Part shown: piece by piece, positions 33,941-61,228 of the stretch
Layout: every line of letters begins with the position of its first letter
How positions within the stretch are numbered: the stretch's first letter is position 1
NCBI GenBank assembly: GCA_965644265.1
Contig: OZ286472.1
Span: 53,010,001 to 53,074,000 of the forward strand
Origin: Glycera tridactyla
Taxonomy: Eukaryota
Direction: 5' to 3'
DNA length: 64,000 nucleotides
Made by a program: the position numbers and the translations under genes
Notes under the pieces: model-generated
What the model was told of the DNA's origin: nothing
What the model saw: only the letters and a program-made list of their open reading frames with translations
Databases searched by the model: none

Positions 33941-34108
33941 NNNNNNNNNNNNNNNNNNNNNNNNNNNNNNNNNNNNNNNNNNNNNNNNNNNNNNNNNNNN
34001 NNNNNNNNNNNNNNNNNNNNNNNNNNNNNNNNNNNNNNNNNNNNNNNNNNNNNNNNNNNNNNNNNNNNNNNNNNNNNNNNNNNNNNNNNNNNNNNNNNNN
34101 NNNNNNNN
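33941..34108. other. Assembly gap (168 N)
   Basis: Run of N. Confidence 1.
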
Positions 34109-39800: not shown

Positions 39801-42800
39801 TTCTTGCAAAGCTGAATCGATATATTCTTTCTTTAAATTTCTGCCAAGGGTTGTTGCTGAATTTTTCAGACATCTGTATCTATGATGGTCAAGTTCAGAT
39901 CTACTTTTATTGTATTTTCTTTTCATGTCATCTCTGGCATCGCAAATTGATAAAAAGTCATGATTTATCCAGGGCGGGAGTCTGCCCCTGACTTTGATCA
40001 TTGTAAACGGGGCACATGTGTCACAAACCTGGAGAAATAATCCTTTAAAAGATTCCCAAGCCTCATTTGCATCAAATTTAGAAATAACTCCAGACCAGTC
40101 AATGAGTGCAATCCTTTGGTTGAAAACATCAAGCTAAAATCTTCTAAATGACCTAACCCGTATGAATCTTGCTTTTGCCTTACATCTTATCAATTTCCTT
40201 TGAAAAAATATGAGGTCATGATCAGTGCACCCCACAGGAATGGCACCCGCCAAGGCTATAATCTCCTCCCTATTTGTTAAGAAAACATCAATACATGTAC
40301 TACTCTGAGGGGTAACACGAGTGGGGACATCGATCATCTGACATAGATTATGCAAATAAGACATATTTCGCAACAATCTGTATGCTCTAGTAGTTCTGTC
40401 CAATTGATTTATGTTTACATCTCCAAGAATATTTATTTCACAATTGTGTTTGTTTGAGCAAAAGGCAATAGCTGTTTCCAATATTGACAGTCCTGTTTGC
40501 ACATCACCATGAGGAGGTCTATAAATGTTGATCAGGAAGACTGGTCTTGTATTTGTAAAATTCACCTGGAGACCCAAAAATTCAATGTCTTTTGAGCTGT
40601 GGTTCAACTCTGGGACACAAGTGACATTCAGATCCGCTTTCACATAAACACAAATCCCCCCACCACTCTGTCTATGGCTGTGATCCTGTCTATCAAGTCT
40701 GTATAAATTGTAGCCCTGGATTTCCATGTGAACATTTTCAATTTCTGTAGTTAAAAAGGTTTCAGATACAGTCGAACCTGTCTATAAAGACCGCCTTCGG
40801 TCGCATCAAAAAGCGGTCTTTATGGGCAGGTGGTCTTTATAGAGAGGTCATTTACTGGTTAAAATACTACCACGGTCGCAGTTCAGGTGGTCTTTATAGA
40901 GAGGTGGTCTTTATAGAGAGGTGGTCTTTAGAGCAGGTTCGACTGTACTCCCAAAATGTCAATTGAGCTGTTTTGTAATATTCTGATCACTTCCTCTACC
41001 TTATTTCTTAGGCTACATATATTCAAATGACCAAATGTATGTCCCTTCAGGTTTTGCAAGTTGCTCAAAGTTTGTTCAGACATTAAATTTTGAAGCAATG
41101 ATTAGCCCTGAAAATCTATTCTGATTCATATAAATGCACTGAACAAAAAGGCATAGCATGTATTCATGGTCTCCAGGAATCATAAAACAGCTTTCATCAT
41201 TATATAACAGGAAATGCATTTGTATACCCCAAGAGAGTTTCACAGCCTCAGATTTTGGTAATAGGTTCTCAAGTGATTTCATATCTGCAGCTATACCTGT
41301 ATACCCAAGTTTGTGGTAGAAATCAGCCCCAGCATTTTCAAAATATATAGCACTATGGATGTTATAGAATCGTTCAGTAAAATGGATATGATCAATGGTA
41401 TGAACTATGAATCCATCATTCTCCTGTGTTACAAGGAAAAGATGATAGATATGTCTTGTACTAGCCCTCTTGACAATGAGCACTAGAATCAGCTGTGTAT
41501 CCTGTTGTAAACATGTTTGCTCTATGTTGCAATAAGTGATAATATTGGATCATATTACATTGTCAACATTCAAACATCTTTTTATGTCATGCATGGAAGA
41601 AAATGATCACATAAACATTCTTACTTTGGTGTGTAATAAAACAACATTTTTCATCACATTCATGGTTTGTCATTCTTTCTTGTTTCACCTATCCGTTTCA
41701 ATATTGGTAATAAGCACTGAGAGAGATATCGTACATGCATCACTGAGAACCTCTCAGCTGGTCTCTAGCTTAGAAAAACATGCATTTTGACAGCTGTCTC
41801 ATCAAGACCACAGTCAACACACATTATGTTATTCCTACAAGGGGAGGTGCTATGGTCAAAGGTGGGATATCGAAGCAAAGTCATGGTTGGATGGGGTAAT
41901 CAGACAGAGTTATCTCACAGCTGTACATCCCCAAACGGGCTACAATCAAAACAAGAGATCGGCGGGGGAACCACAGAACAGATGCTGAAGCCGATTCAAG
42001 ATGAGATTATGGCAAGTGGTAGGTTGCATTACGATACCCGATACCCGGAGTTAGGCACATTACCCCTCAATCCTGCTGCCTGGGTCAATATCCAGGCTTG
42101 TATCACACTGTTTGTATCGATAAACACGATAGTTTATTTGTCGAAGTCCTCGGATCTTTACCATAACCTCCATGTTTGATTCCAACATCCGGGCCTCATT
42201 AGACTAGACCAGGATGGTACGCGTCACCTGATTGGCTGACCAAGTCACGTGAGTGAGTTCGCCAATAAAAAGTACAGACGGCCTCTTCGGTCATTTCCAA
42301 TTGTTGTCAGTTTGACAAAAGTAGTTCCGACAAGAGAGAATAAAGTTCCATTCATCTATGTTATTTTAGCCCACAGTTCTATCAAGAGAATCATCAAAAA
42401 GCCATCCTTGTCCAAAATGAGAGTTTGATTATCCTTCATGCCTACTTATGAATAGTTTCAGCAAGGAATGCATGCCATCCTGATCTTGCCCCACCCCCCA
42501 CCCTCCAATATGAGAAATTGCCCGTGGCTGTTATGTCTTGGACACACCCTCCAGATTAAAGTTGCATCTGATAAACTACCTAGTGGCAGCAAATAACACA
42601 ACCAAAGAGATAGTTGTCCTTTGAGCAAGAAATATTTCTGACCAGGCATTTTATGATTGCCAAATTTAATTTAGAATCAGTTCTGGTTGAAATAATAACA
42701 GGAAAATTTTTACAGAGGATGAGATGAGGTTAATGTTTTTCCTTGAAAAAAGAAAGAACACCTCAACAATACCATACTGGTCTATCAGGTAAATCTTGCT

Positions 42801-45800
42801 TAGGGCAATAGAATTAATTGTCACTTCATGCAAGAGCCATTATGATATATGTCATTCAAGGAGTCAAGTGTGATCTATTTCTCTGGTTGGGTAACATTAC
42901 TTACAATACATTAAATTGGAAATAGTCTTCAATTGATGAGACAAGGATATTGCAGTTCCCTGAAATGAAGAACACAATACTATTCTGGACTACTCAGTAA
43001 ATCTTGTGTTGAGTATTTGGAACTCTACACTAAAAATTTGGTGAGTTCATATAATCTAGTAATTCTTTTTCATTTCTAATTGGGGTTCCCTTTGCTGTCC
43101 TGGACTTTGAGACAAACAGTTGCCCTCGGAAGGTCCAAGCTCTTGACAATTTCTTTTGTGGCCCTCTGTTTTGCCTGGCAGTAAAAAACAAACTTGCCAT
43201 CTGACGTGTAAGGAACTCACTGATAAAGATGTTCTTTTTAGCCCTGGCTAATTGAAGTCTATTCTGGTAGCATGCCATACTTTTGGCAGATGAGACAAAT
43301 TCTACTAGTATGGTTCGAGGTCTGCTGCCCACTCTACCAATACGCCTTGCAATCTCTATATCTCCAAGTAAAATGCTTGGGTTAATCAAACCTCTCATTG
43401 AATTTACTAGATGTTCAGGGGTTGATTCATTGTCCACTTCATCTATCCCATCAAACATTAGCATTTTCAGATTGCCAGATGTTTCCAGTGTTTGAACCTT
43501 TTCAGTCAGATCTTTCAAAGATTGGTCATAATTGGAAATGGAATTTCCTGTAGATTGAGCAGTTTGAAACTCGTTCAACATTTTGCTCATATCAGCCAGC
43601 TTTTTGTCAATACTGTCTGGTTCAAGAATGTGCAGATTAGCTAAATCATTCTGTGCTTTAAGTGAGTCAGTTTCTAATTTTGCAATTCTAGCCAACATTT
43701 GGTCAATATTCAGATCTTGAATCTTTTTGTCACACTTATGGGCAATGCGAAATACAGACTCTTCAATAACTGGTATCTTAGCAGTAAGTTCAGTGCATTT
43801 TGCCATATCAGTTTTCAAAACAGCACTTGTTTCTTCTAAAGAAGCAATAGCTTTGTCAGTAGACACCAGCTTGGTATTTATCTTGTCTAGAGAATCATTC
43901 AAGGCACCCACAATCAACTTTCTGTGTTCATCACTGCTGAAAACGTTCACAAAACATTCATTGAATAATTGCTTGAATTGTATTGGGTCAATTTTCACAC
44001 TACCAACACCTGAAACTGGATCTTCTTTGTCTTCCATCTTGTCAGAGTGTGTGGATTTAGTTTTAGTAGAAGGAGTTCTTCTTGAGCAGAAATATTTTCC
44101 ACTTGGTCGTACCAGCTTGCACCAGGAAAATTTGGCCAGTCCTCTGGATAATCACTTGCTTCTTCCACCTCTTGATAAAAACGATCTTGCAGATGGTGAA
44201 GTTTATGTTCAATTTCAATAAATGACTCTCTTCTTGCAGAATTGTCCGCTGCGCTCGCAAATAGTTCTGAGACTTCTTGTAGAATGCTCACACCTTCTGG
44301 ATAAATAGCTGATCTGTCCTCTGGTATGAAACTGCGGATGGTAGCATCAAAGTCTAGCTGTTTTGGGGTGCTCTGAGTGACAATGAATGGGCCATGAACT
44401 CCAGATGTACTCTGCAGTGGGGTTGTCAATTTATCAGTGGAGCGGGTACGCTTCGTGCTGACCCCTCCCTCAGGTGATTCATCGGGCTTCCTTTTAACAT
44501 GTGTTTGTCTACCCTCTCTGAACGATGGAGCTGGGGTATTCAGGCTACTTGTAAGTTCAAGGCTGCCGGAGATATTGTTGTTATCGCTCACCAGTGTATT
44601 GTCTTGTGGTTCACTCGCTTCCATAGTTACCAGTCAGCCGCCATGTTGTTTATCTCCGTCACGACACTGTTACGTCTTCAAAGTACGGAATGCATCAAGA
44701 ATGAATACTTCTGATGGCTAGAACAAACATCATCGTGATCCATGCCACTTCACCCTCTTCATGTCAGGAATGGCAACTGACAACTTCTAGGCATTTCTTC
44801 ATTGATCCCGATATCTAGCGGTTGCTTACGATCCCTCTCCCATGCTCCCGGCATAGGAATACAGTCTGATGGTGATCCTGAAGATTGCATATGTAACTGA
44901 CTGTAAGCTGATGTTCAAGCTTGAAAGCACTTGGCTCTATTTTGAGCAAAGCACAGTACTTTGAACTGTAGACTACAAACCAGCTCTACAAATATGACTG
45001 CCCTCTGCTTACACAGGGTTCATACGCGTCCTGGAATCCTGGAATAGTTATGGAAAATTGCCAAAGAGAATTCCAGGACTGGAAAAGTTATGGAAAAATG
45101 AATTTCGCCAAAAATGTCCTGGAATTTTGAGAATTTGCTGAAATTTTGTATCTTTTATGATAAAAAGAATGACAGAAACATGGCATCGTCAATGTGTGGT
45201 GATCAAGAATTTGAAATTCAATACTGAATAAAAATCCAATCAGACCATCTGAAAGATCTCACCCCACTAGTCATTTTGGTGTGTACGTTGTGAAAATTGG
45301 ACCAAGATATGACACAAAATGAGTCAATGACAGCTCATTTTAGATTTTCATATTCATTTGCATGTCCTGGAATAATTGCTTGGTGACCTGGAAATGTCTT
45401 GGAAAAGTTATGGAATAAAATTCTGCCAAGCGTGTATGAACCCTGTTACAGTACAATGAAATCACCCTATCTCGTGAACCTGATTGCAGCCCTAGTAACC
45501 TAGAACTGGTGTGTCTTGTTGCTGCACATTGCATAGTGACAATATTTGCTACAGGCAAACTGTCAGCCGCCTAAACCCGAGACTATATGGAGTAATCAAC
45601 GATAAATACTGAAAAATCAAGAATAGGCTTAGAGGGATAGACAGATGTGTTATCATCCACCCCTTCCACACACTGTAAGCTATGAGGAAATGAGGAGGGA
45701 TGATTCTACATCTAGGACCCATCATCCCTGATGGCAACACTTCAAATTAAATATATCTCATGCCCAATGGTGCCCTCCATCGATTTAGAAGTCTGTCAAG

Positions 45801-48356: not shown

Positions 48357-48979
48357 TGGTGACCTGGTGATCTATCTGACCTCGTTGGTACGCACAAGAC
48401 AGACTACTCCGGTTGTGTGAACGACAACTTCAACCTCAAAATGCAGCGCTCCGCTAAGATTGTGGCCCCTCTCAGTCGGTGGTTTTACCAAGGAAGTGAG
48501 CTGGTTGTTAACAGGTAGTTTATTCGATCCATTCATGCATTGGCTAGAGTGATTTATTTGTGTTACGTAAGTTCTATTTGACCATCGTAGCAGACGATTG
48601 TGAATTGGGTGTGTGGATTCTATGATGAGTCGTGTCTAACATCACGTTTTGCTATGTTTACATAGACCATACTGTCATCCAACATAATGACTCAGCCATC
48701 TATCTCAGTACTATGCTTGCATTGCATCCGATGCACTGAGAAATAACCTGAATCAACATTTATTGAGGAATGGGTGCAGGGGTCCTGAAATTTATGTAAT
48801 CACCAGTGGCCCTTTTCACTGTTCATTGGTTGTTCCACTCATTGATTGATGCATGCCATTGTCAACACATATCTCAGATATCAGCTGGATATGAAGCAGC
48901 ACCTTATCTGGATTTGGAGGAATATGAAACAGTGATAGCATGTATGCCCTCAGTGAGGTCGCTTCACCGACTTAGATAT

Positions 48980-49182
48980 TGTGGTGCGCGCGCCGCCGCG
49001 AATCGGCGGCGGAACTAACGCCGGCGCCTGCGCAGCCGGAATCGATAGAGTTTGGCTCACGGCGTTCGCACTACAGCACGTCGTTAGTCTTGAGCCTGAG
49101 CTCAACTCCACCATCACACAACAATCTGTGTATCTACTGATCCAAGTAAGTAGTAATCAGCATTATACAACCCAGCACAACA
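48980..49182 (+). repeat. 5' LTR (203 bp)
   Basis: No difference from the 3' LTR found by eye. CpG-rich first half with an 8-bp GC hairpin CGCCGCCG-cgaat-CGGCGGCG (48991-49011). GTAAGT at 49146-49151. No AATAAA or ATTAAA seen. Confidence 0.97.
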
Positions 49183-49183
49183 T

Positions 49184-49197
49184 TGGTGTCAGATGTG
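49184..49197 (+). promoter_or_regulatory. Primer-binding site, probably tRNA-Leu
   Basis: TGGTGTCAGATGTG, 1 nt after the LTR. One mismatch to TGGTGTCAGAAGTG, the complement of the metazoan tRNA-Leu(CAA) 3' end (recalled sequence). Confidence 0.75.
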
Positions 49198-50430
49198 CTA
49201 AATGGTGGCCCTATTTCGTGTGACATGGTGTATTTATCAGGCTTGTAGCAAGAGTGTTTGTGTTCCATGTTGAATGATTGCCCATGTGGGTGCCTTTGTT
49301 CTCTGGAGCACATGTTCTTGCACTACCTGCCCAACTGTGTTCAGTGTGGTTTTACATTAGGACTTTTGCATGATCATTCGAATTCGATATCTGTGATTAC
49401 GCTATGAACATACAAATGATATTCTGAATTTATTTGAGGAATTTGGTGTGTTCTGCCCATTGTTTGTGTCACATGTGGACTTCACACATGTGGTCCATTG
49501 TGATTGATTTCAGTGCACATGGTCTGTTATTTGATAATTGATTGATTTCTAGTATTTGTATTGTCAGTTCATCTGAATATCCATTGCTTCTCGAGAAACA
49601 ACTAAAGGATAAATTAAGTTTGTTGGGAGATTTACTGAGGTTTGCCCATTGTTTGTGTTAAATGTGGACTTAGGTTAATTGTAAATCAGTTAAATGCCCA
49701 ATTGTGAATCAGTTCAATGACCATACGTTTGCTCTCTGGTATTTGTTAATTCTGCTAAAAGTATCCGCATTGTCATTTGGAATTGAAAAGAAATGATTCT
49801 AGGGAAATCAGCTACATCCTAGATGTGTGTTATTGTGGATTTCATGTGTTTTGCATGGTGTCAGTGCCACATGTTGACTTGTCTTTGTTCAATGTAATGT
49901 TCAAATGCACATGGTTATGCGTAGTGATGATCAATAGCTATAATACTCATATCATTGCTTTGATTTAACATTTAATGGATTTGCTGGAGGGAATCTTTTG
50001 ATATTAATTTACATGACTTTGGGTGCCTTTGTTAAAATTACACATAACTTATGTGATTTAGTTGTTTCAATTCAACTGAAGCAGGATTTCATTTCCATTT
50101 ATCTTACCATGGGATCAGGAGTATAAGCGAATGACATACATAAATATTAGGTTCAATCAGTCTTAAATATATAAGTGATATTTGTGAATGTATTGCATGC
50201 ACATGTTATGTACTTGTTCTCTGTGAACCTCCTGTCACTGTTGGCCCTTGAATAGCCCAGTGGGTTTTTTCGGCTGCGCTCAATTAACCCTGTGTTTGGG
50301 GGTTGACAGTGTTGGTTGGTTTTGCTTTGCCCTGCATGGTGTGTGCATGATTCACATTAACATTATTGTAAGGACCATATTCTATTCGTAAGTCTATTTT
50401 CTCTCTGTCCTGTCTTGTTTGTGAACCAAA

Positions 50431-52239
50431 ATGGCTAGTAAAAAGAAAGTTGATCTGCGGGTGGCATCGCAACGTGAGATAGCCTCAGTGCCAGGGCTGA
50501 ATCATGATCTGGCAGCATCGGTGTTACAGTTGCGCGACCCTGAGGTGGGACTTGGTATAACCTTGGACGGGCTGAGGTGTATAAATGGGGCGGGCGATCT
50601 ATTTGACCGCCTATTGGAATGGGGTCTGATTGTTTTCGAGGGAGATGAAGAGGCAGATCATGACTCTGATGCCACAGTGGTGGATCTCAAGTCAGCAGTT
50701 GAGGCACTGCGGAAGGAGATGGGTGACCTGAAAAGGAGGTCCATTTCTCGCCATACTGTTGATCGGCTGGCCCCACAGGGAGTGTATCGTCGACCCAGGG
50801 ATGATGAGGATATGTGGGGGGAGGATTATTATGACAGGTCGGGGCGTGATGTTGAGAAACGCAGAGAGAGGGATGTTTCTCCAGTCCAACCTGCCTTCGA
50901 GTCCACTCCGGTGGACAGTTGGGATTATAGAGGGACTTCTCGGCCGAGCTCAGTTGACCCTCATGACCCACTGCATGACGGATGGAATCGAGGGTATGGT
51001 GGTAGAGACCATCAAGGGGATGGGCGACATGGGTACCATGGGGGGCATGATGAGGGGCCACGACACCCGGGATATCGTCAGGTCCCCCCACCCCCACCCT
51101 TCCCACAATATCCAATGCCTCCTTTCCCTCCCCACCAGAGTAATGGCTATCCCATGCGCGACCCCTACGCCGGTGGACGGCATCATAACGAGTGGGGAGA
51201 CTATATCCCAGCCATGCGTGATTACCCCCCTCGACCAAGGACCCCACCACCTATGATGGGAGTTGGTGATGCAGCTACATACGGCGGAAGAATATTGGGA
51301 CGCCCGGGATTGGCACCAGGCGGGGGGCCCCGCCAGTCCCCAAGGGGACCTCCACCACCAAAGATGCCAACTTACAATGGCAAGCAGGAGTGGAAGCCAT
51401 TCTTCATCCAATTCGAACGGATGGCGGCAAGATACGCCTGGGATGAAGTGGAGAAGCTTGACAAACTCGTGGAATCCCTGCGAGACAAAGCGCTGAAATT
51501 CTTCAGTGAACGGCCAGAAACAGATCAAGTAGATTACTACCAACTGGCGGCAAGGATGGCTGCACGTTTCGGGAAGAAGGATCTCCCACCAACTGTTCGT
51601 CGCCAGTTGCAGACGGCTCGACAGAACACCGAGGAGACCTTGGAAGAGTTCAGCGACCGGGTTCTTGAGCTGGCTACGGATGGCTACCCGGGGGCTCCGT
51701 CCTCTATGATCGAAACTTTGGCTGTTGATGCCTTCTTGAAGGGATGCACGGACAAGCATGCTGCACTCATCACCATGGACAAAAACCCATGTACCCTTGA
51801 CGGCGCTCTTGCTATGGTGAAGTCAGCCGTACACAACAAGTCGGCCCTACTCGGAAAACCCCAAGGAAAGATAGATGTTAAACAACTGTCATTCGTGGAT
51901 GAGTTGGAGAGTGAGGACGACTTCAGTGTGCGGGCCATCAACCGACCCTCTGTATCATTCTCACAGGGATCTCGGGTGTCCCGGGTGGACCGCCTGGAGA
52001 AAGGGCTTGCAGAGGTGGTAGAGACACAGAAAAAGCTCTTGGCCATGATGAGCGCATCAGGGTCGAATACCAGTCGTCCTGTTACCCAGCGGGCCGTGTC
52101 CCCGGGACGGGATCGGTGCTTTCGCTGTGACCAGCCGGGGCATTTCAGCCGAGACTGCCCACAGAGGGAAGGCTCACGGCCGGGCTCAAGGTCCCAATCT
52201 CCATCGCCCGTGGGAAGTCGCCCGGCACCCCCAAAATAG
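50431..52239 (+). CDS. gag: Gag (602 aa): N-terminal HhH-like domain, disordered linker, capsid-like domain, CCHC knuckle
   Basis: KMPTYNGKQEWKPFFIQFE capsid-type start; CFRCDQPGHFSRDC = CX2CX4HX4C. Confidence 0.93.
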   Translation: MASKKKVDLRVASQREIASVPGLNHDLAASVLQLRDPEVGLGITLDGLRCINGAGDLFDRLLEWGLIVFEGDEEADHDSDATVVDLKSAVEALRKEMGDLKRRSISRHTVDRLAPQGVYRRPRDDEDMWGEDYYDRSGRDVEKRRERDVSPVQPAFESTPVDSWDYRGTSRPSSVDPHDPLHDGWNRGYGGRDHQGDGRHGYHGGHDEGPRHPGYRQVPPPPPFPQYPMPPFPPHQSNGYPMRDPYAGGRHHNEWGDYIPAMRDYPPRPRTPPPMMGVGDAATYGGRILGRPGLAPGGGPRQSPRGPPPPKMPTYNGKQEWKPFFIQFERMAARYAWDEVEKLDKLVESLRDKALKFFSERPETDQVDYYQLAARMAARFGKKDLPPTVRRQLQTARQNTEETLEEFSDRVLELATDGYPGAPSSMIETLAVDAFLKGCTDKHAALITMDKNPCTLDGALAMVKSAVHNKSALLGKPQGKIDVKQLSFVDELESEDDFSVRAINRPSVSFSQGSRVSRVDRLEKGLAEVVETQKKLLAMMSASGSNTSRPVTQRAVSPGRDRCFRCDQPGHFSRDCPQREGSRPGSRSQSPSPVGSRPAPPK

Positions 52240-55200
52240 AAAGAGCTGCCTTTGTTGGCCACAGGACAGCTCGCAGGGACACTGGCCAAGATCACGATTT
52301 TAGTAATATTCTGGATCCGGCTGCGCTCGATCTGGAAAGGAAATGCACCAGCTCGGTGGGGACAAGTGACTCCTACGACTCGGCAGGGCTCAGTCAACAG
52401 AGTCAGATCACCAACCTCGTCATGGATTCAGCCGACTCGGCGGAGCTCAGTCATGCTGATTCTGATGATGACCGTGACGGACAGGTTACTGGACGGACAG
52501 ACGATGCAGTCATGCTCTACCAATCAGATTCGGCAGCGCTCAATCAGGATGGCATGGCAACGGCTGCATGTACTGCACAGACGGAAGACAGACCGGAGGT
52601 GCGGATACGGGAAGTGACATTGTTCGCCGACACACGGGGCCCCATGAAGAACTTAACCATTCCAGCGAAAGTAAATGGGACACCGGTCCCCGCGCTGGTG
52701 GACACGGCGGCCCAAGTGTCGGTCATCAGTGAAGAATTTGCGGCGACCGTGAAAGAGCCTCTGACCTTGACGGACCATTTATGGCTAAGGGGGGCCGGAA
52801 AAGGAAGCAGATTCCCGGCGAGACAGGCAGTCGGAACCCGCATTGACCTGGGGGATACCCTCTACCTGCATGATGTGGTGGTCGCTCCCATCAATGACCC
52901 TTTCATCCTGGGCCTGGACTTCATGCAAAAGCAAGCCATGAAAATAGACATGGCCAGCAACTCTATTCAGGTCGGGGGGGATACCCTTTCCACGCATATA
53001 ACAGACACATGTGCTGGCTCCGGGCGTGTCCGGGGCCTGACCTTGATCGGCGACGTAATTGTGCCACCAGGCTCGATGATCCATGGAACAGCTCGGATGG
53101 AGGGACCGTCAACGATTCCCAGCGCGATGGTGATCGATCCCAGGCCGGACATCGGAGGAATCATGATTCCACACCTCATGGTCAAAGGTCAGCCTGTGGT
53201 TTCCGTCCTCCTGATAAATCCCACGGATCAACGGGTCCATCTACAGGGTGGATTGAATCTGGGATCGGCAGAAGAGGCGGATAAGTTGCTGATCACAAAG
53301 ACACACATGGAAAGCGATAATTTGACACGGAGTGTGCGTCGCTTGGGAGCCGATCAACCAGGGGTTAGTAACCTGCCTGAGTTCCTGGAAGATCTAAGGA
53401 ACCGCTCGAGTAAGCACCTGTCAGAGGCTCAGTCGGCGGCGCTCACTGGCCTCCTCAAGGATTACACGGACGTGTTCGCCAGGGATGATATGGACTTGGG
53501 TCGGTTCACAGCGATCGAACACACTATTGACGTTGAAGGAGCGAAGCCAGTGCGCCAAGGGATGCGTCGCACACCTATCGGATTTGAGGCAGAGGAGAAG
53601 AAGCACCTGGAGGGCATGTTGGAGCGCGGAGTCATCCGACCGTCATCCTCAGGATGGGCATCTGCACCGGTCCTTGTACGAAAAAAATGCGGAGCAGTCC
53701 GATACTGCATCGACTTCCGGGCGCTGAACGCTGTCACCAAAAAAGATGCCTTCCCTTTGCCGCTAATTGAGTCATGCATGGATGCCTTGTCGGGGACCAA
53801 GTTTCTGAGCACATTGGATTTAGCGTCTGGCTACTGGCAGATCGAGTTAGCGGAAGAGGATAAGCCCAAGACTGCCTTCATCACTCGCTATGGCCTGTTC
53901 GAGCATGAACGCATGCCCTTTGGCCTTTGCAATGCACCGGCAACCTTCCAGAGGGCCATGCAGTTAGTCCTACATGGCATGCTATGGGAAGAATGTTTGG
54001 CCTACCTTGATGATGTCGTGGTGCTCGGTCAAGACTTCGGGGATCATCTGGAAAAACTCAAGCGAGTGATGGATCGGTTTCGAGAGTACAATTTGAAGTT
54101 GAAGCCCAAAAAGTGCGTGTTGTTCCAGAAAGAAGTACGCTTCCTAGGACATGTAGTGAGTGGCACTGGAGTGGCGGTGAATCCTGACAACGTCGAGTCT
54201 GTGAAGACCTGGCCGGAGCCGAAATCAGTAAAGGAGGTGGAGTCATTCCTGGGATTCATCAATTACCATCGGAACCATATCGCTCATCTGGCGGATCTGA
54301 CAGCTCCCCTAAATGAAGTGACCGGGTCTAAGGCCACCTTCAAATGGGGTCCAGAGCAACAGGAGGCATTTGAAAAGATCAGGGCCGCCATGATCAGCTC
54401 GGCAGTGCTCAGCTATCCCGACCCTGATCCCGAGTGTACCTTCATATTGGATACAGACGCCTCGGACCGAGGAGTAGGGGCCGAGTTGTCACAAATCCAA
54501 CGGGGATGTCCGAAGGTCATCTCATATGGTAGTCGGGTCCTGACCCCAACACAGCGACGCTACTGTACCACTCGCAAGGAACTCCTTGCAGTAGTTACCT
54601 TCACCAGACAGTATCGTCACTACCTTCTCGGACGTCACTTCATCGTTCGTACTGACCATCATAGTTTGACATGGCTACTGAGGTTCCGCAATCCTGAAGG
54701 CCAGCTTGCCAGATGGTTGGAGGAGCTTGGCCAGTACAGCATGGAGATAGTACACAGGCCGGGAAAGGACCACACCAATGCAGATGGACTTTCACGCATC
54801 CCAGACAACAACCTAAAATGTGACTGTTACTCCTCCGGTTCGGATCCCAAATTGTTACCATGTGGAGGTTGTAGCTACTGCCACCGAGCTCACAGCCAAT
54901 GGACGCGATTCGAGGAGGACGTGGATGATGTAATCCCCATTGCCATTCGGTCGGTGTCTCACACCCCAAACGACAATAAGACGGACGTGAAGCACGGTGG
55001 CCACATCAATTGGATGGAGACCTACACGCCGGCAGAACTATCCCGACTCCAACACGAAGATCCTGATCTCAGGGTGGTCCATGACTTTTTGAAGGAAACT
55101 TCAGTGGAGGAGACCCCAGAGATTTTCCTGAGTAGCCCTGCCGTCAAGCATTGGTGGCTAAACAAGGAGCAGCTGGATGTTAAGGAGGGTGTCCTCTACT

Positions 55201-56723
55201 ATAGATGGGAAAGTGATCATGGCCCAACTCTCCAGTTCCTGGTGCCTGAGTCACTGAAGCAGGAAGTGCTCAGTCTGTGTCATGACAGAAGGTCTGCTGG
55301 ACATCTCGGGGAGAAGAAGACACTTGCTCTTCTTCGTAACCGGGTGACCTGGTATGGAATGTCTAGGGACTCAAAGCTATTCTGTCGCAGTTGTGCAACC
55401 TGCAGCTTGAACAAAAAGGCAAACGTGAAGGCAAAGGCACAGTTGGGACAGTACCATGCAGGGGCACCCATGGAGCGGGTCCATATGGATATTCTAGGAC
55501 CACTAACACCATCTGCCAAGGGCAACCTCTACATCTTGGTTATAATATGCCAGTTCACCAAGTGGATAGAGGTATTTCCACTCCCTCGTCAAACTGCTGA
55601 GGACGTGGCCAGTGCAGCATTTGACGGATTCATCAGCCGGTTTGGTTGCCCTCTTCAAATCCACACTGATCAGGGAAAAAACTTTGATGGCAAACTGTTC
55701 CATGCTTTCTGCAAACTTCTCGAAGTCACCAAGACGCGTACCACGCCTTACCGGCCGGCAGCAAACGGTCAGGTCGAGCGGTACAACCGCCTCATTTTAC
55801 AGATGGTACGTTGTAACCTGGAGGGTGGACAGAAGAATTGGGATGAGCATCTTCCTTCCCTGGCCGGGGCAATCCGAGCCATGGAAAACAGGCAAACCGG
55901 GTTCACGCCGAATCTCATGATGCTAGGGAGAGAGGTACTCCAGCCAGTAGATTTGCTCTTTAGGCCTCCACCAGAGCAGGAAAAGAAGAAAACACCAGCA
56001 TCGTATGTATCTGAGCTCTGTGAAAGGCTCCGGAGAGCACATGAGCTAGCAAGAACAAATGTTCGAGCAGCCCAGCGAAGACAAAAAAGGGACTACGACG
56101 TTCGCCTCAAAGAACACACGTATGCCGTGGGAGATCTGGTGTACCAGCTGAACTCGGCTACCAGAATAGGACAAAGCAACAAGCTGAAACGACCCTGGAA
56201 GGGCCCCTTTCTGGTGACCGAAGTGCTCTCGCCGGTGGCATATCGAGTGAACAGCCGCCGGAAAACGCAGGTTGTGCACCACGATCGGCTTCGTCTTTGT
56301 GAGGACAGAGTGGTACCCTTCTGGACACGGAGGATGAGACACCAGTTGCTGGACCTGGACACCACCATCGGCTATGACGAGGCAGAGCGGGAGGAGGAGG
56401 ATGAAGACGATGAGTTGCCATTTGGTTTGGATGAACTGCTTGACCCGCTGCACAACACCCCTAGTCTGAACCCTGGCCCGGCGGAGCTAGGCCAGGGAAA
56501 GGAGGTTAGTGCAGTACCAGACCTACATGGTGAAAAAGAGGAGGCTCTGTCCGAAGGTGATGCACCGGAGCCTGGCCCGGCAGAGCTAGGCCAGGCTTCT
56601 CAGACTTATGACAAAAAGGTAGTTAAACCCCATTCTGCATGTGTAGATCCTCCCCTAGATCCCCTACCACGTCGACGGGTGCGAAGGCAACCCAAACGGC
56701 TGGAGGGGTTCATCCTTGACTAA
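52230..56723 (+). CDS. pol: Pol (protease, RT, RNase H, integrase), in the -1 frame relative to gag
   Basis: PR LVDTAAQVSVI; RT ERMPFGLCNAPATFQR and YLDDVVV; RH DTDASDRGVG and KELLAVV; IN H-H-C-C zinc finger plus D(MDILG), D(TDQG), E(VERYN), and a GPF motif. The frame is open from 52131; the start shown is the inferred shift site. Confidence 0.96.
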   Translation, partial: PKIERAAFVGHRTARRDTGQDHDFSNILDPAALDLERKCTSSVGTSDSYDSAGLSQQSQITNLVMDSADSAELSHADSDDDRDGQVTGRTDDAVMLYQSDSAALNQDGMATAACTAQTEDRPEVRIREVTLFADTRGPMKNLTIPAKVNGTPVPALVDTAAQVSVISEEFAATVKEPLTLTDHLWLRGAGKGSRFPARQAVGTRIDLGDTLYLHDVVVAPINDPFILGLDFMQKQAMKIDMASNSIQVGGDTLSTHITDTCAGSGRVRGLTLIGDVIVPPGSMIHGTARMEGPSTIPSAMVIDPRPDIGGIMIPHLMVKGQPVVSVLLINPTDQRVHLQGGLNLGSAEEADKLLITKTHMESDNLTRSVRRLGADQPGVSNLPEFLEDLRNRSSKHLSEAQSAALTGLLKDYTDVFARDDMDLGRFTAIEHTIDVEGAKPVRQGMRRTPIGFEAEEKKHLEGMLERGVIRPSSSGWASAPVLVRKKCGAVRYCIDFRALNAVTKKDAFPLPLIESCMDALSGTKFLSTLDLASGYWQIELAEEDKPKTAFITRYGLFEHERMPFGLCNAPATFQRAMQLVLHGMLWEECLAYLDDVVVLGQDFGDHLEKLKRVMDRFREYNLKLKPKKCVLFQKEVRFLGHVVSGTGVAVNPDNVESVKTWPEPKSVKEVESFLGFINYHRNHIAHLADLTAPLNEVTGSKATFKWGPEQQEAFEKIRAAMISSAVLSYPDPDPECTFILDTDASDRGVGAELSQIQRGCPKVISYGSRVLTPTQRRYCTTRKELLAVVTFTRQYRHYLLGRHFIVRTDHHSLTWLLRFRNPEGQLARWLEELGQYSMEIVHRPGKDHTNADGLSRIPDNNLKCDCYSSGSDPKLLPCGGCSYCHRAHSQWTRFEEDVDDVIPIAIRSVSHTPNDNKTDVKHGGHINWMETYTPAELSRLQHEDPDLRVVHDFLKETSVEETPEIFLSSPAVKHWWLNKEQLDVKEGVLYYRWESDHGPTLQFLVPESLKQEVLSLCHDRRSAGHLGEKKTLALLRNRVTWYGMSRDSKLFCRSCATCSLNKKANVKAKAQLGQYHAGAPMERVHMDILGPLTPSAKGNLYILVIICQFTKWIEVFPLPRQTAEDVASAAFDGFISRFGCPLQIHTDQGKNFDGKLFHAFCKLLEVTKTRTTPYRPAANGQVERYNRLILQMVRCNLEGGQKNWDEHLPSLAGAIRAMENRQTGFTPNLMMLGREVLQPVDLLFRPPPEQEKKKTPASYVSELCERLRRAHELARTNVRAAQRRQKRDYDVRLKEHTYAVGDLVYQLNSATRIGQSNKLKRPWKGPFLVTEVLSPVAYRVNSRRKTQVVHHDRLRLCEDRVVPFWTRRMRHQLLDLDTTIGYDEAEREEEDEDDELPFGLDELLDPLHNTPSLNPGPAELGQGKEVSAVPDLHGEKEEALSEGDAPEPGPAELGQASQTYDKKVVKPHSACVDPPLDPLPRRRVRRQPKRLEGFILD

Positions 56724-56833
56724 CCAGACACCCTAGCGGACAGTGAGGGGATTGCATGGATCCCCCTCAAACCTGGTTTTGACCAGCAATAACATAACAT
56801 TCTCTCTGCCCCACAGGTCAAAATAGTGGCAAG

Positions 56834-58327
56834 ATGGCTGAATACGAAGAACTCGTACTCGATTATGATGAGGAGGGTTTGGCACAGGAGGAGCCATATG
56901 TGCCACACTCCATACCCAGGGGGGCCACAAGGGGAAGGGGTTCTTGGTGTCCCCTGTGCCCTCATCGTTTCACTCATGTGAGGCGGCATGTTATATCCGA
57001 TCATCTACCCTGGTACACCTGCCCCTCGACAGCGTGTTGGATCTGTGGTCAGCAGGAACAACATGTCTCATTCGTTCTGAGGCACCTGTTGACTCATGAT
57101 CAGGCCTCTTCTGGGCAGTTCCAGTCCCAAAATGCTGGTGAGGAGTATGTCTACCTCATGAACGGGCTCCTGCACGAAATCGGCCAGGTAAATGGGTTGG
57201 CCGACATTCCCGCCCTCTTCGAGTATGTCCGGGGCCAGGAGAGCCTTCATCCCAAGTCAACCACCCCAATCAGATCCCTGGATGTGGAACTGATGGGGCT
57301 GTTCCTGTCAGTGAACAGGCAGGAAGCGCCACCTTCGTTCAGCTTGACGCCGCCGAACTCTCCAGCATGCCTGCTCCATTGGCGAGTATTGGCAAACTTG
57401 CTGGCAGAGCTCCCCCTCCATGAGCAACGGCGTCTGCGGGAACTTGGCGTCCGCAGAGACTATTGGGGTGAGGCCTTGCAGGCCCTGCCAGAGGTGGACC
57501 AGGTGTGGGCAGGGGAGGTTGTCGACGCCCACCTCCACTTAGATGCCTGGTGCAAGCGCACAGGATGCCAGAATTTGGGTGGAATCCTGGACCTCCCCGG
57601 TGTCGGACAATTTCCATTCCAGCTCGTAGGCGCAGTTTCCAATCTGTGCTGGCCAAGGTCCTGGCCGGGGGCTCAGGCGAGGGCTCGCCTCCTTGAAGAC
57701 AATCGGGTCCGACTGACATTTGGCATCCATCCCCGCATAGCTTCAGACCCTAGTGTGTCAGATGCCGCCTTGAGGGGTCACTTGGCTGCTCTCCGCACCA
57801 ATCTGAATGCTGACGGGGTTGTGGCCGTCGGAGAATGCGGACTCGACTATACCGCTTGCCCCGAGGGGAATACGGCAATGCGGCGGCGTCAGGAGGGGTG
57901 CTTCTTGCATCAAGTGCTCCTGGCAGAACCAAAAGACCTCCCCCTGGTGATTCATAGCCGGGATGGAGGTACGGGCTCAGCGGCAGAGCGGTGTCTGCAG
58001 TTACTGAAGTCAGTCCTGCCGCGTCACTATCCGGTGCATCGGCACTGCTTCACGGGGTCCCTCCAGGAGTACCAACAGTGGAAACATGCATTTCCGCGGT
58101 GCATTTTTAGCATCTCGCCCTTGGTCCTCCAGGATCCCGTCCTGTGCCAGGTAGTCCGGAGCATGGAGATCGGAAGTCTCGCTCTCGAGACTGACGCTCC
58201 CTACCTGGCTACATCATTTGCATCCCTGGGGGAAATTGCAGAGGTCATTGGCAGGGCACACAATATCCCATCCTCATTAGTTCTGAGGATCACCACCCAG
58301 ACAGTCCGAGCCTTTTACGGTCTGTAA
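56834..58327 (+). CDS. C2H2-zinc-finger/TatD-family nuclease fusion (497 aa), inside the retrotransposon
   Basis: VDAHLHLD, FGIHP, VGECGLDY, LPLVIHSR, HCFTG and LETDAPY are the ordered TatD metal-binding motifs. N-terminal C39-C42-H52-H57 and C68-C71-H84-H88. Kozak aagATGG; intronless. Confidence 0.93.
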   Translation: MAEYEELVLDYDEEGLAQEEPYVPHSIPRGATRGRGSWCPLCPHRFTHVRRHVISDHLPWYTCPSTACWICGQQEQHVSFVLRHLLTHDQASSGQFQSQNAGEEYVYLMNGLLHEIGQVNGLADIPALFEYVRGQESLHPKSTTPIRSLDVELMGLFLSVNRQEAPPSFSLTPPNSPACLLHWRVLANLLAELPLHEQRRLRELGVRRDYWGEALQALPEVDQVWAGEVVDAHLHLDAWCKRTGCQNLGGILDLPGVGQFPFQLVGAVSNLCWPRSWPGAQARARLLEDNRVRLTFGIHPRIASDPSVSDAALRGHLAALRTNLNADGVVAVGECGLDYTACPEGNTAMRRRQEGCFLHQVLLAEPKDLPLVIHSRDGGTGSAAERCLQLLKSVLPRHYPVHRHCFTGSLQEYQQWKHAFPRCIFSISPLVLQDPVLCQVVRSMEIGSLALETDAPYLATSFASLGEIAEVIGRAHNIPSSLVLRITTQTVRAFYGL

Positions 58328-58442
58328 GGAAGCTGCCAATGTATCAAGGGGGGCTGCTGGCCAGCTGTGGATTCATCTGGCTCCTATTTTTCGATCTGAC
58401 CAGGTAAGTTGGGGGCGAATGTGATGTGACTTCAATTCCTAG

Positions 58443-58969
58443 TCCGGCTGAGCTCGACTTAGGATCCACGTATGATCCATGCATTCTCCTTCATCCCTGG
58501 TAGCGCTTGAGAAGTCGAAGCCAGATAGGTTGGCCCCATAGTAGGAGTCCTAAGCGTTATTGTTGTCAGTCCGGCAGAGCTCGACTGGGGACACTAAGAC
58601 TTGCCAATTTGATCTGTCTCCCCTCCTCCGGCTGAGCTCGAGAAGTGGAAGCCAGAACTGTAAATAATTTATTGATCCTTGCCAATTCTTGCCATCGGCC
58701 TGTCCTTCCCTCCTCCGGCTGAGCTAGAGGGGTGGAATCCAGGCATGTATATATTTTAGCTAGCCTTGGATCAATTACGTTGGTCCACGGCAGCATATAT
58801 TCCCATGTAGTACATTTTGTCTCCCCTCTTCCGGCTGAGCTCGAAGTGTGGAAGTCCGAAATGTATATATTGTAATCTAGTTAAATTGTTTATGTGTTCC
58901 GTACCAGTTGCACTCGGTACGAGACCTCCTTCTAGTCTCTGACCCGTTTCCTCCTCCGGCTGAGCTCGA
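58443..58969 (+). repeat. Six dispersed copies of TCCGGCTGAGCTCGA in the retrotransposon 3' UTR
   Basis: Copies start at 58443, 58570, 58627, 58714, 58830 and 58955 (0-1 mismatch). The last four extend into ...GTGGAAG-like tails. Confidence 0.9.
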
Positions 58970-59142
58970 GGTATGGAAGTCAGAACTAGGATTATCGTTG
59001 TATTTATATCAACCAAGCCAAACTACCCTCCATTGAACCCTTTCATTAATCAACCTTAGCCCCAATCTACTAGTTCCCGGGGTCATTTTCAGGTACTGGG
59101 GGACCCTAGATCGGCTGTGCTGAACAGGGTCCCAATTTATAT

Positions 59143-59154
59143 GACGGGGAGGAG
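59143..59154 (+). promoter_or_regulatory. Polypurine tract
   Basis: GACGGGGAGGAG immediately upstream of the 3' LTR TG. Confidence 0.85.
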
Positions 59155-59357
59155 TGTGGTGCGCGCGCCGCCGCGAATCGGCGGCGGAACTAACGCCGGC
59201 GCCTGCGCAGCCGGAATCGATAGAGTTTGGCTCACGGCGTTCGCACTACAGCACGTCGTTAGTCTTGAGCCTGAGCTCAACTCCACCATCACACAACAAT
59301 CTGTGTATCTACTGATCCAAGTAAGTAGTAATCAGCATTATACAACCCAGCACAACA
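59155..59357 (+). repeat. 3' LTR (203 bp)
   Basis: Direct repeat of 48980-49182, preceded by a purine tract. Confidence 0.97.
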
Positions 59358-59394
59358 ATATCACTGAATGATATCCATACTCTGCTACCTTGAA

Positions 59395-60187
59395 CAGGTT
59401 AGGGCCTGGCCTGTTATTCCAGTACGTACTGAAATCACAGGGCGTACTGGAATCACAGGATGGTGGGTGTACTGTAATCACAGGACGTACTGGGCTTTCA
59501 GTACACTGTGCTGTGATGAGTGGATTTTGAGTAAATAACCAAGTATGTCCAGAATTTTCCCTTACTGTTCTCGGGAACTGTGATCTTCATTGGCTGTAAA
59601 GTACTGACATGAAAACACAGTATTTTCGGGTTTAGGGAACACCAATATCGTTGCAATTGTGTGAGATGGAGCAGAATTATATACCATTGAAAATAGGCTA
59701 AAGGGTGTTATTCACGATCTCTGATGTCAAAATCACCTTGCCATTGCAAAACCACTTGGTGGATTTTTCTCAACTTGCACTTAAATTGTGAACATCTGCC
59801 TCCAAAATAGGCATGAATTTACAGTGAGCTCATCAATCAAAAATTTGTCAGGAGACATAAATGTGGCAAGATTTTATGATTTTTCATTTTTGCCTCCAAC
59901 TCCCAACTGCATATCTCACCTCCAAATTACCCAATTTCGATAAAAGTGGGCTCCTCAGAATCAGAAAATAGTCAGCTTTCGAACCAATATCTAGCAGTTT
60001 GTGGGATTTGGGAATAAATAGTGATTTTGAGGAAATATTTAGACCCATTCATGGTTGACTGATAGTCTAACCTCAGTGTCCTGGGATCCCAGGACGTACT
60101 GTAATCACAGTACACCTGCTGTCCTGTGATTTCAGTACGCCCTGTGATTTCAGGACGTACTGGAATAACAGGCCAGGACCTAACCTG
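59395..60187. mobile_element. 793-bp TIR element with 5-bp TSD TTGAA
   Basis: ~65-bp TIR CAGGTTAGG(G/T)CCTGGCCTGTTATTCCAGTACG...; subterminal GTACTG(A/T/G)AATCACAG repeats; TTGAA at 59390-94 and 60188-92. Confidence 0.88.
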
Positions 60188-61228
60188 TTGAAGAGTGATA
60201 TCCGTACCTTGAAGTACTTTGTGTCTTGCAGTAGAATCTATAGAAGTCATCAAGTTATTCCTTGCACATTTATCCCAAATTTTGAAGATTGGGTCCTTGC
60301 TTTTTCAGTGTATGGAGATAACAACAATGTCATGAAATCTGCTGGCCACTGATTTATACCACTGCATTCTGGTTACCAATGACTCTTAGTGTAGGGAGGA
60401 GGCTTCTAAATGAGTGCCAAGATGAGCCACTCACTCGCCCAATATACCATACCTATGACAGTGACCAAGGAAAGATGAGGCCTTCATAATCTGGCAGTGT
60501 ATCTTGACAGAAATAGATTGGCCAAAATGGTCAAGCAAAATTGTCCATAGATTTTTCATGTTTGACTTGAAAATTGCTTGTAGTATGTCACAGAATTGGC
60601 AACTACTGGCTGTTGTGCGTGATAATAAGCATGTACATGCACACTTGTCAGTTATCAATGCTCGCAGTGGTAAATAGGTGAGGTCACTGTAGATGTCTTC
60701 CAGTGATTTGAATACTGGACCTGATATACATCCATGCACACATATATCTTCCAATTGCATGCATTACCTTCATAATGTACATAGTGACATCACCCAGTAC
60801 TATTGATGCAGATGCAAAGGTAGGTTTCTGAGATCCATGCTGGAGAGAAGTGATTTATGTGTATTCACTGAAGTAATAACTAGGACATGTTTGTTTTAGA
60901 GAAAATCTGCATGTCAATGATGAGTTGCCTCCCTCAAAATGGGATGCAATAAAATCATTTCAACTTGGTGACATCAAGTCAGTACAGTTTGGTTGATTGC
61001 ATCACCACTAACCCATAGCTTGTGAAGAATTCATGAGGAGGATGCCAAGCTTTGCCTCAGTGAGATGTTTGATGTTCATTTCAAAATTTGTCATTAGACT
61101 TTGTGTGATGGATTGGCACATCTAAAATTTTCTGAGGAATGCCATCTGATCCCAGAATGCTCATCATTATCAAAGAGGGGGCTCTCAGACAATGTTCTAA
61201 TCACAGGATGCAGGTTGCCCAGGTGTGA

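Follow-up and report, generated by a model that had tools for sequence, protein, structure and literature searches.

The 64,000-bp window analysed here (the whole stretch of DNA, positions 53,010,001 to 53,074,000 of Glycera tridactyla contig OZ286472.1) contains an intact, very young Ty3/Gypsy retrotransposon of 10,378 bp, which carries a gene for a TatD-family protein in the position where an envelope gene would normally be found. The features of the element, all on the forward strand, are:

48976..48979 (+), target-site duplication, left copy (ATAT)
48980..49182 (+), 5' LTR of 203 bp with TG...CA ends
49183..50430 (+), long 5' leader with three diverged repeats of about 56 nt (49427-49880) and a donor-like TTC/GTAAGT at 50388, 43 nt before the gag ATG
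49184..49195 (+), primer-binding-site-like sequence starting TGG, one base after the 5' LTR
50431..52239 (+), gag, 602 aa, with a weak N-terminal helix-hairpin-helix hit (50440-50538), Retrotrans_gag (51469-51681) and a CCHC knuckle (52114-52164)
52131..56723 (+), pol open frame, with protease (52650-52949), RT (53676-54155), RNase H (54345-54737), integrase zinc domain (55242-55418), integrase core (55464-55757) and integrase C-terminal SH3-like domain (56130-56294)
52230..52236 (+), CCCAAAA heptamer directly before the gag stop, a candidate -1 frameshift site
56803..56816 (+), splice-acceptor-like pyrimidine tract plus CAG, 17 nt before the ORF3 ATG
56834..58327 (+), ORF3, 497 aa, the TatD accessory gene (whole ORF with stop)
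56834..56920 (+), acidic N-terminal tip of ORF3 (aa 1-29)
56942..57097 (+), two Cys2His2 fingers of ORF3 (aa 37-57 and aa 66-88), predicted as beta-beta-alpha units
57134..57439 (+), predicted helical middle domain of ORF3 (aa 101-202)
57515..58324 (+), class II (HxH) TatD nuclease domain of ORF3 (aa 228-497), predicted TIM barrel
58328..59142 (+), 3' untranslated region with four diverged repeats of about 64 nt (58618-59009)
59143..59154 (+), polypurine tract abutting the 3' LTR
59155..59357 (+), 3' LTR
59358..59361 (+), target-site duplication, right copy (ATAT)

The two LTRs are 100% identical and have no other copy in the window, and the same four bases directly flank both of them. No tRNA gene matching the primer-binding-site-like sequence was found in the window. 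The pol domains were located by Pfam along the 1455-aa ORF that begins at 52356, in the order protease, RT, RNase H, integrase, and no stops interrupt the frame, which is open from 52131 and overlaps the end of gag in the -1 frame; frameshifting at the heptamer is inferred. In gag, the zf-CCHC model scores 29.6 bits, above its cut-off, whereas Retrotrans_gag scores 23.9, just under its cut-off of 24.1. The helix-hairpin-helix hit recurs weakly in the gag of four of the related loci described below (L003, L090, L091 and L092).

ORF3 is an uninterrupted, intronless frame of 497 codons from ATG to TAA, located inside the element after the pol stop at 56721-56723. Its GC3 is like that of gag and pol and unlike that of the host flank. 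Pfam TatD_DNase (PF01026) matches with 114.6 bits against a cut-off of 27 (E=6.6e-33), and a profile built from the ORF3 family covers the whole chain of Escherichia coli YcfH at E=7e-41. The AlphaFold model (pLDDT 84.7) superposes on YcfH with TM (target) 0.83 and rmsd 2.7 A, and on TATDN3 with TM 0.78; Foldseek also matched TatD. Every residue numbered in the initial annotation, including C39, C42, H52, H57, C68, C71, H84, H88, D231, H233, H235, H299, E334, H374, H404 and D454, is at that position. The ligands D231, H233, H235, H299, E334, H374, H404 and D454 are invariant in 13 sequences of the family, and E334, H374, H404 and D454 align to the corresponding positions of YcfH and TatD. The D231-A-H233-L-H235 sequence places ORF3 in class II, defined by an HxH motif in place of the (G/A)xN motif of class I (PMC10085689). 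ORF3 nevertheless scores below the NCBIfam cut-offs for the named bacterial groups: the YchF/TatD subfamily model TIGR00010 gives 86.6 against 206 bits, and all four equivalog models (TatD, YcfH, YjjV and QatD) score far below their cut-offs. ORF3 is a relative, but not a member, of these groups.

The N-terminal part of ORF3 begins with an acidic tip (pI 4.1; nine D/E and no K/R in the first 25 residues), which contains an L-D-Y-D-E-E-G-type motif shared by close relatives, and which is probably disordered according to its low pLDDT. It is followed by the two Cys2His2 fingers (C39, C42, H52, H57 and C68, C71, H84, H88), each predicted as a beta hairpin plus helix at pLDDT 90-97. In 145 related modules the ligand columns are 97-100% conserved, except for the fourth ligand of finger 2, which is not at a fixed column in relatives. 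Finger 2 of the window's ORF3 has C-x2-C-x12-H-x3-H spacing, but finger 1 is non-canonical (C-x2-C-x9-H-x4-H). The Pfam zf-C2H2 model gave no hit even at E up to 10, only noise-level zf-DNL and zf-H2C2_2, whereas a family profile searched against PDB matched finger pairs of CTCF (E=1.3e-4) and ZBTB17 (1.8e-3); Foldseek gave only non-significant local matches to finger pairs, at rmsd 3-4 A. The third part is a helical domain of about 100 aa predicted with pLDDT above 90, with a conserved P-P-x...L-L-H-W-R motif near aa 172-185 and no Pfam, NCBIfam or significant PDB fold match. Pfam, NCBIfam and PHROGs gave nothing for the N-terminal 229 aa, and Foldseek gave no significant match for the module as a whole. 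The initial annotation was right to describe a complete TatD-family enzyme with an N-terminal Cys2His2 module in the env slot of a Ty3/Gypsy element, but the nucleic-acid-binding module that it proposed is larger than two fingers.

The possibility that ORF3 substitutes for an envelope protein in exit or entry is contradicted by its sequence and predicted fold, despite its position between pol and the 3' LTR and its likely spliced expression. No signal peptide or transmembrane segment is present (the maximum 19-residue hydropathy is 1.56, in a stretch inside the barrel), no env-like family was hit in Pfam, and the predicted fold is a soluble TIM barrel. In a viral structure library the only match with E <= 0.001 is an uncharacterized giant-virus protein.

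The gag-pol-TatD order, or its LTR-collapsed permutation, is kept in nine other loci, from sea urchin and unnamed assemblies (L001-L006, L090, L091/L092), and two of these elements were picked by pol similarity alone. The order gag-pol-TatD is found in L001, L002, L005, L006 and L090, whereas L003, L004 and L091/L092 show LTR-collapsed permutations. L006 is a full-length element of Strongylocentrotus purpuratus, enclosed by LTRs of 373 bp that are 99.7% identical. ORF3 identity falls to 26% while the ligands stay invariant. The seven ORF3s examined in full contain no stops, at 21-56% pairwise identity, and their divergence tracks that of pol (Spearman 0.82 over 21 pairs). Between the ORF3 of the window and that of L001, pN is 0.31 and pS is 0.71, the same in both halves of the ORF; synonymous sites are near saturation (saturated in four of six comparisons), so that dN/dS values would be only upper-bound estimates. 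Across the family, 375 representatives at 50% identity carry the N-terminal module, and 86 of the best 150 carry the module plus TatD. A metagenome scan with the family alignment, which keyed on the generic TatD motif, returned 80 loci matching only the TatD domain at 23-37% identity, two of them with 'human gut metagenome' in their names, none of which has pol or gag, and a family-specific DNA pattern found nothing in a collection of viral contigs.

These observations make it very unlikely that a cellular TatD gene lies in the element by chance or by a recent transduction. Stand-alone relatives do exist, such as one from Littorina (P0024) with no pol, gag or LTR within 10 kb, and the S. purpuratus copy (LOC105437668) is catalogued as an ordinary host gene, but the latter lies between LTRs, downstream of pol, and the recurrence of the gene in the same slot, its identity tracking pol, its lack of introns and its composition all speak against a passenger. 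In a neighbour-joining tree, without support values and without placement relative to named TATDN2 and TATDN3 orthologues, the TatDs of the elements form one clade, sister to small stand-alone eukaryote-type TatDs. This pattern favours one old capture of a eukaryote-type YcfH/TATDN2-3-like gene, with at least one loss or TatD-less relative: one relative (L093) that is as close in pol as the TatD-bearing elements are to each other has no room for ORF3, so the gene is dispensable in at least one line. We conclude, with a probability of about 0.9, that ORF3 is a genuine accessory gene of a lineage of metazoan Ty3/Gypsy retrotransposons, kept under purifying selection.

ORF3 may be expressed separately from Gag-Pol, from a spliced subgenomic mRNA as env genes are, by joining a donor in the leader to the acceptor-like site before its ATG. 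ORF3 is in a different frame from pol, after a gap of 110 nt, and a comparable acceptor-like site lies within 120 nt of the ORF3 start in seven of nine related elements, against about 0.18 expected per element. Splice donors, however, were not consistently found with a strict pattern, and the splice-donor role of the leader site is inferred.

Characterised class II TatDs are 3'-to-5' exonucleases on single-stranded DNA and incise abasic sites in duplex DNA (PMC10085689). In the absence of activity, substrate or expression data for this protein, its function can only be inferred from its intact ligands. The reading that we favour, tentatively (about 0.4), is that the finger and helical module brings the enzyme to a nucleic acid, or to the particle or pre-integration complex of the element, where the TatD domain acts on the element's own reverse-transcription products, trimming damaged or unfinished 3' ends and processing lesions so that more cDNA reaches an integration-competent form. 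Against this, the element already has RNase H and integrase, and most Gypsy elements manage without such a gene. The trimming of cDNA, processing of AP sites, TREX1-like clearance and attack on rival elements suggested by the initial annotation likewise remain inference.

Clearance of surplus cytosolic cDNA, so that host DNA sensors are not triggered, would be compatible with a 3'-to-5' exonuclease made apart from Gag-Pol that could act outside the particle, but it is unlikely: nothing in the sequence points to a cytosolic role or to sensing pathways, and degrading its own cDNA costs the element. Equally doubtful is removal of RNA strands, by which ORF3 would help RNase H to clear template or primers, or resolve R-loops at integration or transcription sites. 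ORF3 belongs to the HxH class that contains TATDN2, which degrades the RNA strand of R-loops and cuts hairpin RNA (PMC10711561), and its best sequence matches are YcfH-type rather than TATDN1-type; however, pol already has a complete RNase H domain, and the N-terminal region of ORF3 differs from what is described for TATDN2. Less likely still is finger-guided nicking of chromosomal or foreign DNA, to prepare or bias integration sites or to damage competing elements. The profile similarity to DNA-reading fingers of CTCF and ZBTB17 and the AP-endonuclease-type incision known for TatDs would allow it, but two fingers read only about 6 bp, and the 4-bp duplication and full integrase fit ordinary integrase-mediated insertion at the single site available.

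The closest precedent is the DEDDy-type 3'-5' exonuclease (and GDSL esterase) ORF3 of the Juno and Vesta LTR retrotransposons of bdelloid rotifers (Rodriguez, Kenefick and Arkhipova 2017, PMC5408684). These are also soluble, enzymatic, non-env ORFs between pol and the 3' LTR of Gypsy-like elements, with intact catalytic residues and no coiled-coil or transmembrane segments, some of them with a Cys/His zinc motif, and an auxiliary role in the replication cycle has been proposed for them but not proven. The fold and chemistry are unrelated, however (DnaQ-like DEDD against TatD TIM barrel), and only TatD_DNase is found in the ORF3 described here. The rotifer ORFs were gained at least twice, are shared with Penelope-like elements and showed no clear departure from neutrality within genomes, whereas here the data favour one capture that co-diverges with pol, and pN is well below pS between lineages. 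The dUTPase domains of some retroviruses and LTR retrotransposons (mentioned in PMC5408684) are likewise accessory enzymes, probably for nucleic-acid hygiene, but dUTPase sits inside pol and acts on the nucleotide pool, whereas ORF3 is a separate gene and a predicted nuclease. QatD, of the bacterial anti-phage system QatABCD (PMC13434339), is another HxH-type TatD recruited into a conflict between a genome and a mobile or viral element; NCBIfam QatD matches ORF3 at 8.5e-11 (41 against a cut-off of 230 bits), but QatD serves the host against a virus, whereas here the element itself carries the enzyme. The cellular class II enzymes YcfH, YjjV, TATDN3 and TATDN2 share the HxH motif and full set of metal ligands, but are stand-alone proteins of about 260 aa, except TATDN2, which has a long N-terminal extension; ORF3 carries a family-specific finger and helical module. 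No description of a TatD in a retroelement was found in the literature searched, which did not include Repbase and GyDB entries. The presence of a second, unrelated nuclease fold in this slot, conserved across a large and old lineage, suggests that handling of DNA ends or lesions is a recurrent need of these elements, and the lineage offers natural fusions of a TatD, a family that still lacks a clear cellular role, to a putative targeting module.

The finger and helical module, which has no family entry, also occurs in ankyrin and B-box proteins without any nuclease, among them giant ankyrin-repeat proteins that carry it in tandem; it may mediate protein contacts rather than nucleic-acid binding. 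A more speculative and unlikely possibility is that ORF3 is a counter-defence gene in an old arms race, its TatD domain processing lesions or ends that host restriction introduces into the cDNA, and its module being a recognition surface that hosts have copied, or originally supplied, in the ankyrin and B-box proteins, which would act as decoys, sensors or the donor family. If so, a single module would link a retroelement accessory gene to an unrecognised family of host proteins in marine invertebrates.

The ORF at 56834-58327 is a clean frame of 497 codons, and lies in a GC-rich block (0.48-0.57) within DNA that is mostly 0.37-0.42 GC. That block is a single LTR retrotransposon of 10,378 bp, the mapped features of which are as follows:

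48980-49182: 5' LTR, 203 bp
49427-49880: three diverged ~56-nt repeats in the 5' leader
50440-50538: weak helix-hairpin-helix (HHH_3/HHH) hit at the N-terminus of gag
56834-58327: ORF3, the TatD gene
58618-59009: four diverged ~64-nt repeats sharing a CCTCCGGCTGAGCTCGA-like core, in the 3' untranslated region
59155-59357: 3' LTR, 203 bp

The LTRs are 100% identical, begin with TG and end with CA, and are flanked on both sides by ATAT. A TGG-initiated sequence follows the 5' LTR, and a 12-nt purine tract abuts the 3' LTR. Between the LTRs lie a 1.25-kb leader, gag (602 aa, with a capsid-like domain and a CCHC knuckle), pol, ORF3, and a 0.83-kb 3' region that contains the four diverged repeats. 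The pol frame overlaps the end of gag in the -1 frame, and its domains run in the order protease, RT, RNase H, integrase. A CCCAAAA heptamer sits directly before the gag stop, as expected for -1 frameshifting, which is inferred. The weak helix-hairpin-helix hit recurs in the gag of four related elements (the loci designated L003, L090, L091 and L092), and represents a possible DNA-binding motif that seems typical of this clade. All three ORFs are intact and the LTRs are identical, so the insertion is very recent. No second copy or solo LTR was found in the window.

The evidence that ORF3 encodes a TatD domain is unambiguous. Pfam PF01026 matches with E=6.6e-33, and a profile of the protein and 12 relatives covers E. 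coli YcfH from residue 3 to residue 257 at E=7e-41, followed by other YcfH-type proteins, E. coli TatD, human TATDN3, YjjV and TATDN1. The AlphaFold model (pLDDT 84.7, pTM 0.74) gives a predicted TIM barrel for residues 228-495, which superposes on YcfH (TM 0.83, rmsd 2.7 A) and on TATDN3. Every TatD motif residue that the initial annotation had listed is present at its numbered position, and these residues are invariant in an alignment of 13 sequences. The D-x-H-x-H motif places the enzyme in class II as defined by Dorival and Eichman, a class that contains TATDN2, TATDN3, YcfH and YjjV and binds two metals. ORF3 has no hydrophobic segment outside the barrel, and is not an env.

The N-terminal module consists of an acidic, probably disordered tip (9 acidic and no basic residues in the first 25), two Cys2His2 units, and a confidently predicted helical domain at residues 101-202 that has no family match or significant fold match. 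In 145 related modules, the ligand columns of the Cys2His2 units are almost invariant: C39 in 134/134, C42 in 134/135, H52 in 136/137, H57 in 138/139, C68 in 136/137, C71 in 135/137 and H84 in 132/134. In contrast, the column of H88 is His in only 28 of 126, because the spacing to the last ligand varies. Although the zf-C2H2 model of Pfam does not hit, a profile of the module does hit tandem fingers of CTCF (E=1.3e-4) and ZBTB17 (1.8e-3), and both units are predicted as hairpin plus helix at pLDDT above 90. The description of two C2H2-type fingers in the initial annotation is therefore accepted, with finger 1 being non-canonical in spacing.

Relatives of ORF3 were found at 26-56% identity, and the DNA surrounding them was inspected.

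Table. Arrangement of loci related to the element (locus; source; arrangement).
L001; GCA_013332675.1; gag-pol-TatD
L002; GCA_029979705.1; gag-pol-TatD
L005; ENA assembly; gag-pol-TatD
L006; S. purpuratus (AAGJ06000013.1; element at L006:4477-13693); TatD protein annotated as LOC105437668, downstream of a pol homologue and between 373-bp LTRs that are 99.7% identical
L003, L004; Logan contigs; TatD-gag-pol, as expected when an assembler collapses the two LTRs
L090, L091/L092; ENA, chosen by pol similarity alone (about 60% in RT-integrase); both carry a TatD ORF after pol

The RefSeq-style gene of S. purpuratus, "uncharacterized protein LOC105437668", is ORF3 of a full-length Gypsy element, but its long N-terminal region does not match the finger module profile, apart from a short L-L-H-W-R-type motif. 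In L005, a ~56-nt tandem array (8888-9655) fills the gap between pol and ORF3, and ORF3 (10001-12010) carries an extra C-terminal NADAR domain (PF08719). All seven pol and seven ORF3 sequences that were translated in full are free of stops. Pairwise identity of the TatD domain tracks that of RT-integrase (Spearman 0.82, Pearson 0.91 over 21 non-independent pairs), with TatD evolving faster (56% against 75% for the closest pair). Between the window and L001, pN is 0.31 and pS is 0.71, in the N-terminal module and the TatD domain alike; because synonymous sites are near saturation, dN/dS of about 0.2 is an upper-bound estimate. ORF3 also shares the base composition of gag and pol. These results contradict the possibility that ORF3 is a passenger or a chance ORF.

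In a neighbour-joining tree of TatD domains, constructed without support values, all element-borne proteins fall in one clade. Its sister group consists of small stand-alone proteins, mostly of 298-317 aa, one of which lies on sparse, eukaryote-like contigs next to a proteasome-subunit exon and has YcfH-type proteins as its best solved relatives, whereas bacterial-size sequences lie outside. In the absence of named TATDN2 and TATDN3 orthologues from the comparison, this topology favours a single capture of a eukaryote-type class II TatD. The lineage is large: the N-terminal 229 aa alone find 375 representatives at 50% identity (137 at E<=1e-10), and of the best 150, 86 have module plus TatD and 57 look like fragments. 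However, the gene is not universal in the wider pol clade. An oyster element (L093:4101-11355, Saccostrea cucullata JAVVLV010005764.1), which is as close in pol (50-60%) as the TatD-bearing elements are to each other, has identical 134-bp LTRs and no room for a third ORF, with only about 280 nt between pol and its 3' LTR; its pol is broken by two stops and at least one frameshift. This element shows that TatD is absent from part of the wider pol clade. A 533-aa periwinkle protein of the same TatD clade (P0024 of Littorina saxatilis; L095:10001-11602, CM074572.1) has no pol, gag or LTR within 10 kb, and may be a stand-alone, domesticated or orphaned copy.

ORF3 is in a different frame from pol and starts 110 nt after the pol stop. 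A pyrimidine tract plus CAG ends 17 nt before its ATG, and a comparable acceptor-like site lies within 120 nt of the ORF3 start in 7 of 9 elements, where about 0.18 per element is expected by chance. A donor-like GTAAGT lies 43 nt before the gag ATG in the window, but such donors are not consistently found in relatives. Expression from an env-style spliced subgenomic mRNA is therefore plausible but unproven.

Characterised class II TatDs are metal-dependent 3'-to-5' exonucleases on single-stranded DNA and AP endonucleases on duplex DNA. The most likely role of ORF3, inferred rather than shown and with a probability of about 0.4, is to process the element's own reverse-transcription products by 3'-end trimming and lesion incision. 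Clearance of surplus cDNA is a less likely alternative. Because TATDN2 degrades the RNA strand of R-loops, removal of the RNA strand from hybrids may also be considered, but is equally unlikely. Finger-guided cutting of chromosomal or rival DNA is more doubtful still. None of these roles has been shown, and nothing in the sequence discriminates strongly between them.

The finger-plus-helical module also occurs 2 to 7 times in tandem in giant proteins of 1,000-3,000 aa that have no TatD domain (L094:10001-18979, ENA ERZ25069296 ctg18395; proteins P0311, P0314, P0307, P0329, P0335, P0358, P0382 and P0399). In most of these proteins ankyrin repeats also match, and two others start with a B-box. 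P0314 is an intronless ORF of 8,979 nt next to a paralogue, with no pol nearby. The ligands of finger 1 are invariant in these copies, whereas finger 2 is degenerate in about half. The presence of the targeting module in nuclease-free ankyrin proteins warns that it may bind protein rather than nucleic acid.

The nearest precedent is the DEDDy 3'-5' exonuclease, together with the GDSL esterase, encoded as ORF3 by the Juno and Vesta elements of bdelloid rotifers (PMC5408684). The slot is the same, the protein is likewise soluble with intact catalytic residues, and the role is equally open, but the fold is unrelated and the rotifer ORFs were gained more than once. A non-env enzymatic ORF3 is already known; the enzyme family and the targeting module appear to be new. 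No description of a TatD gene in a retroelement was found in full-text literature searches, although prior annotation in Repbase or GyDB, which were not covered, cannot be excluded. In the viral structure library, the only match with E <= 0.001 is an uncharacterized giant-virus protein.

Other features of the window lie outside the element:

33941-34108: a run of 168 N
38493-40727, minus strand: remnant of a non-LTR retrotransposon
43030-44624, minus strand: two overlapping ORFs of 335 and 209 aa
59406-59506 and 60076-60188: two clusters of short 18-25-nt repeats (GTACTG..ATCACAGG-like)

The non-LTR remnant comprises a reverse transcriptase ORF (RVT_1, E=2.4e-42) and an endonuclease-like ORF. 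The best database relative covering most of the query is 52% identical (one partial hit reaches 61% over 60% of the query), and the only named hit is from the coral Oculina patagonica at 45%. The two overlapping ORFs have no significant family match, only noise-level hits, and may be part of another repeat. The two repeat clusters lie just downstream of the element, about 600 bp apart, and may be the ends of another small repeat or element into or beside which the Gypsy element inserted.
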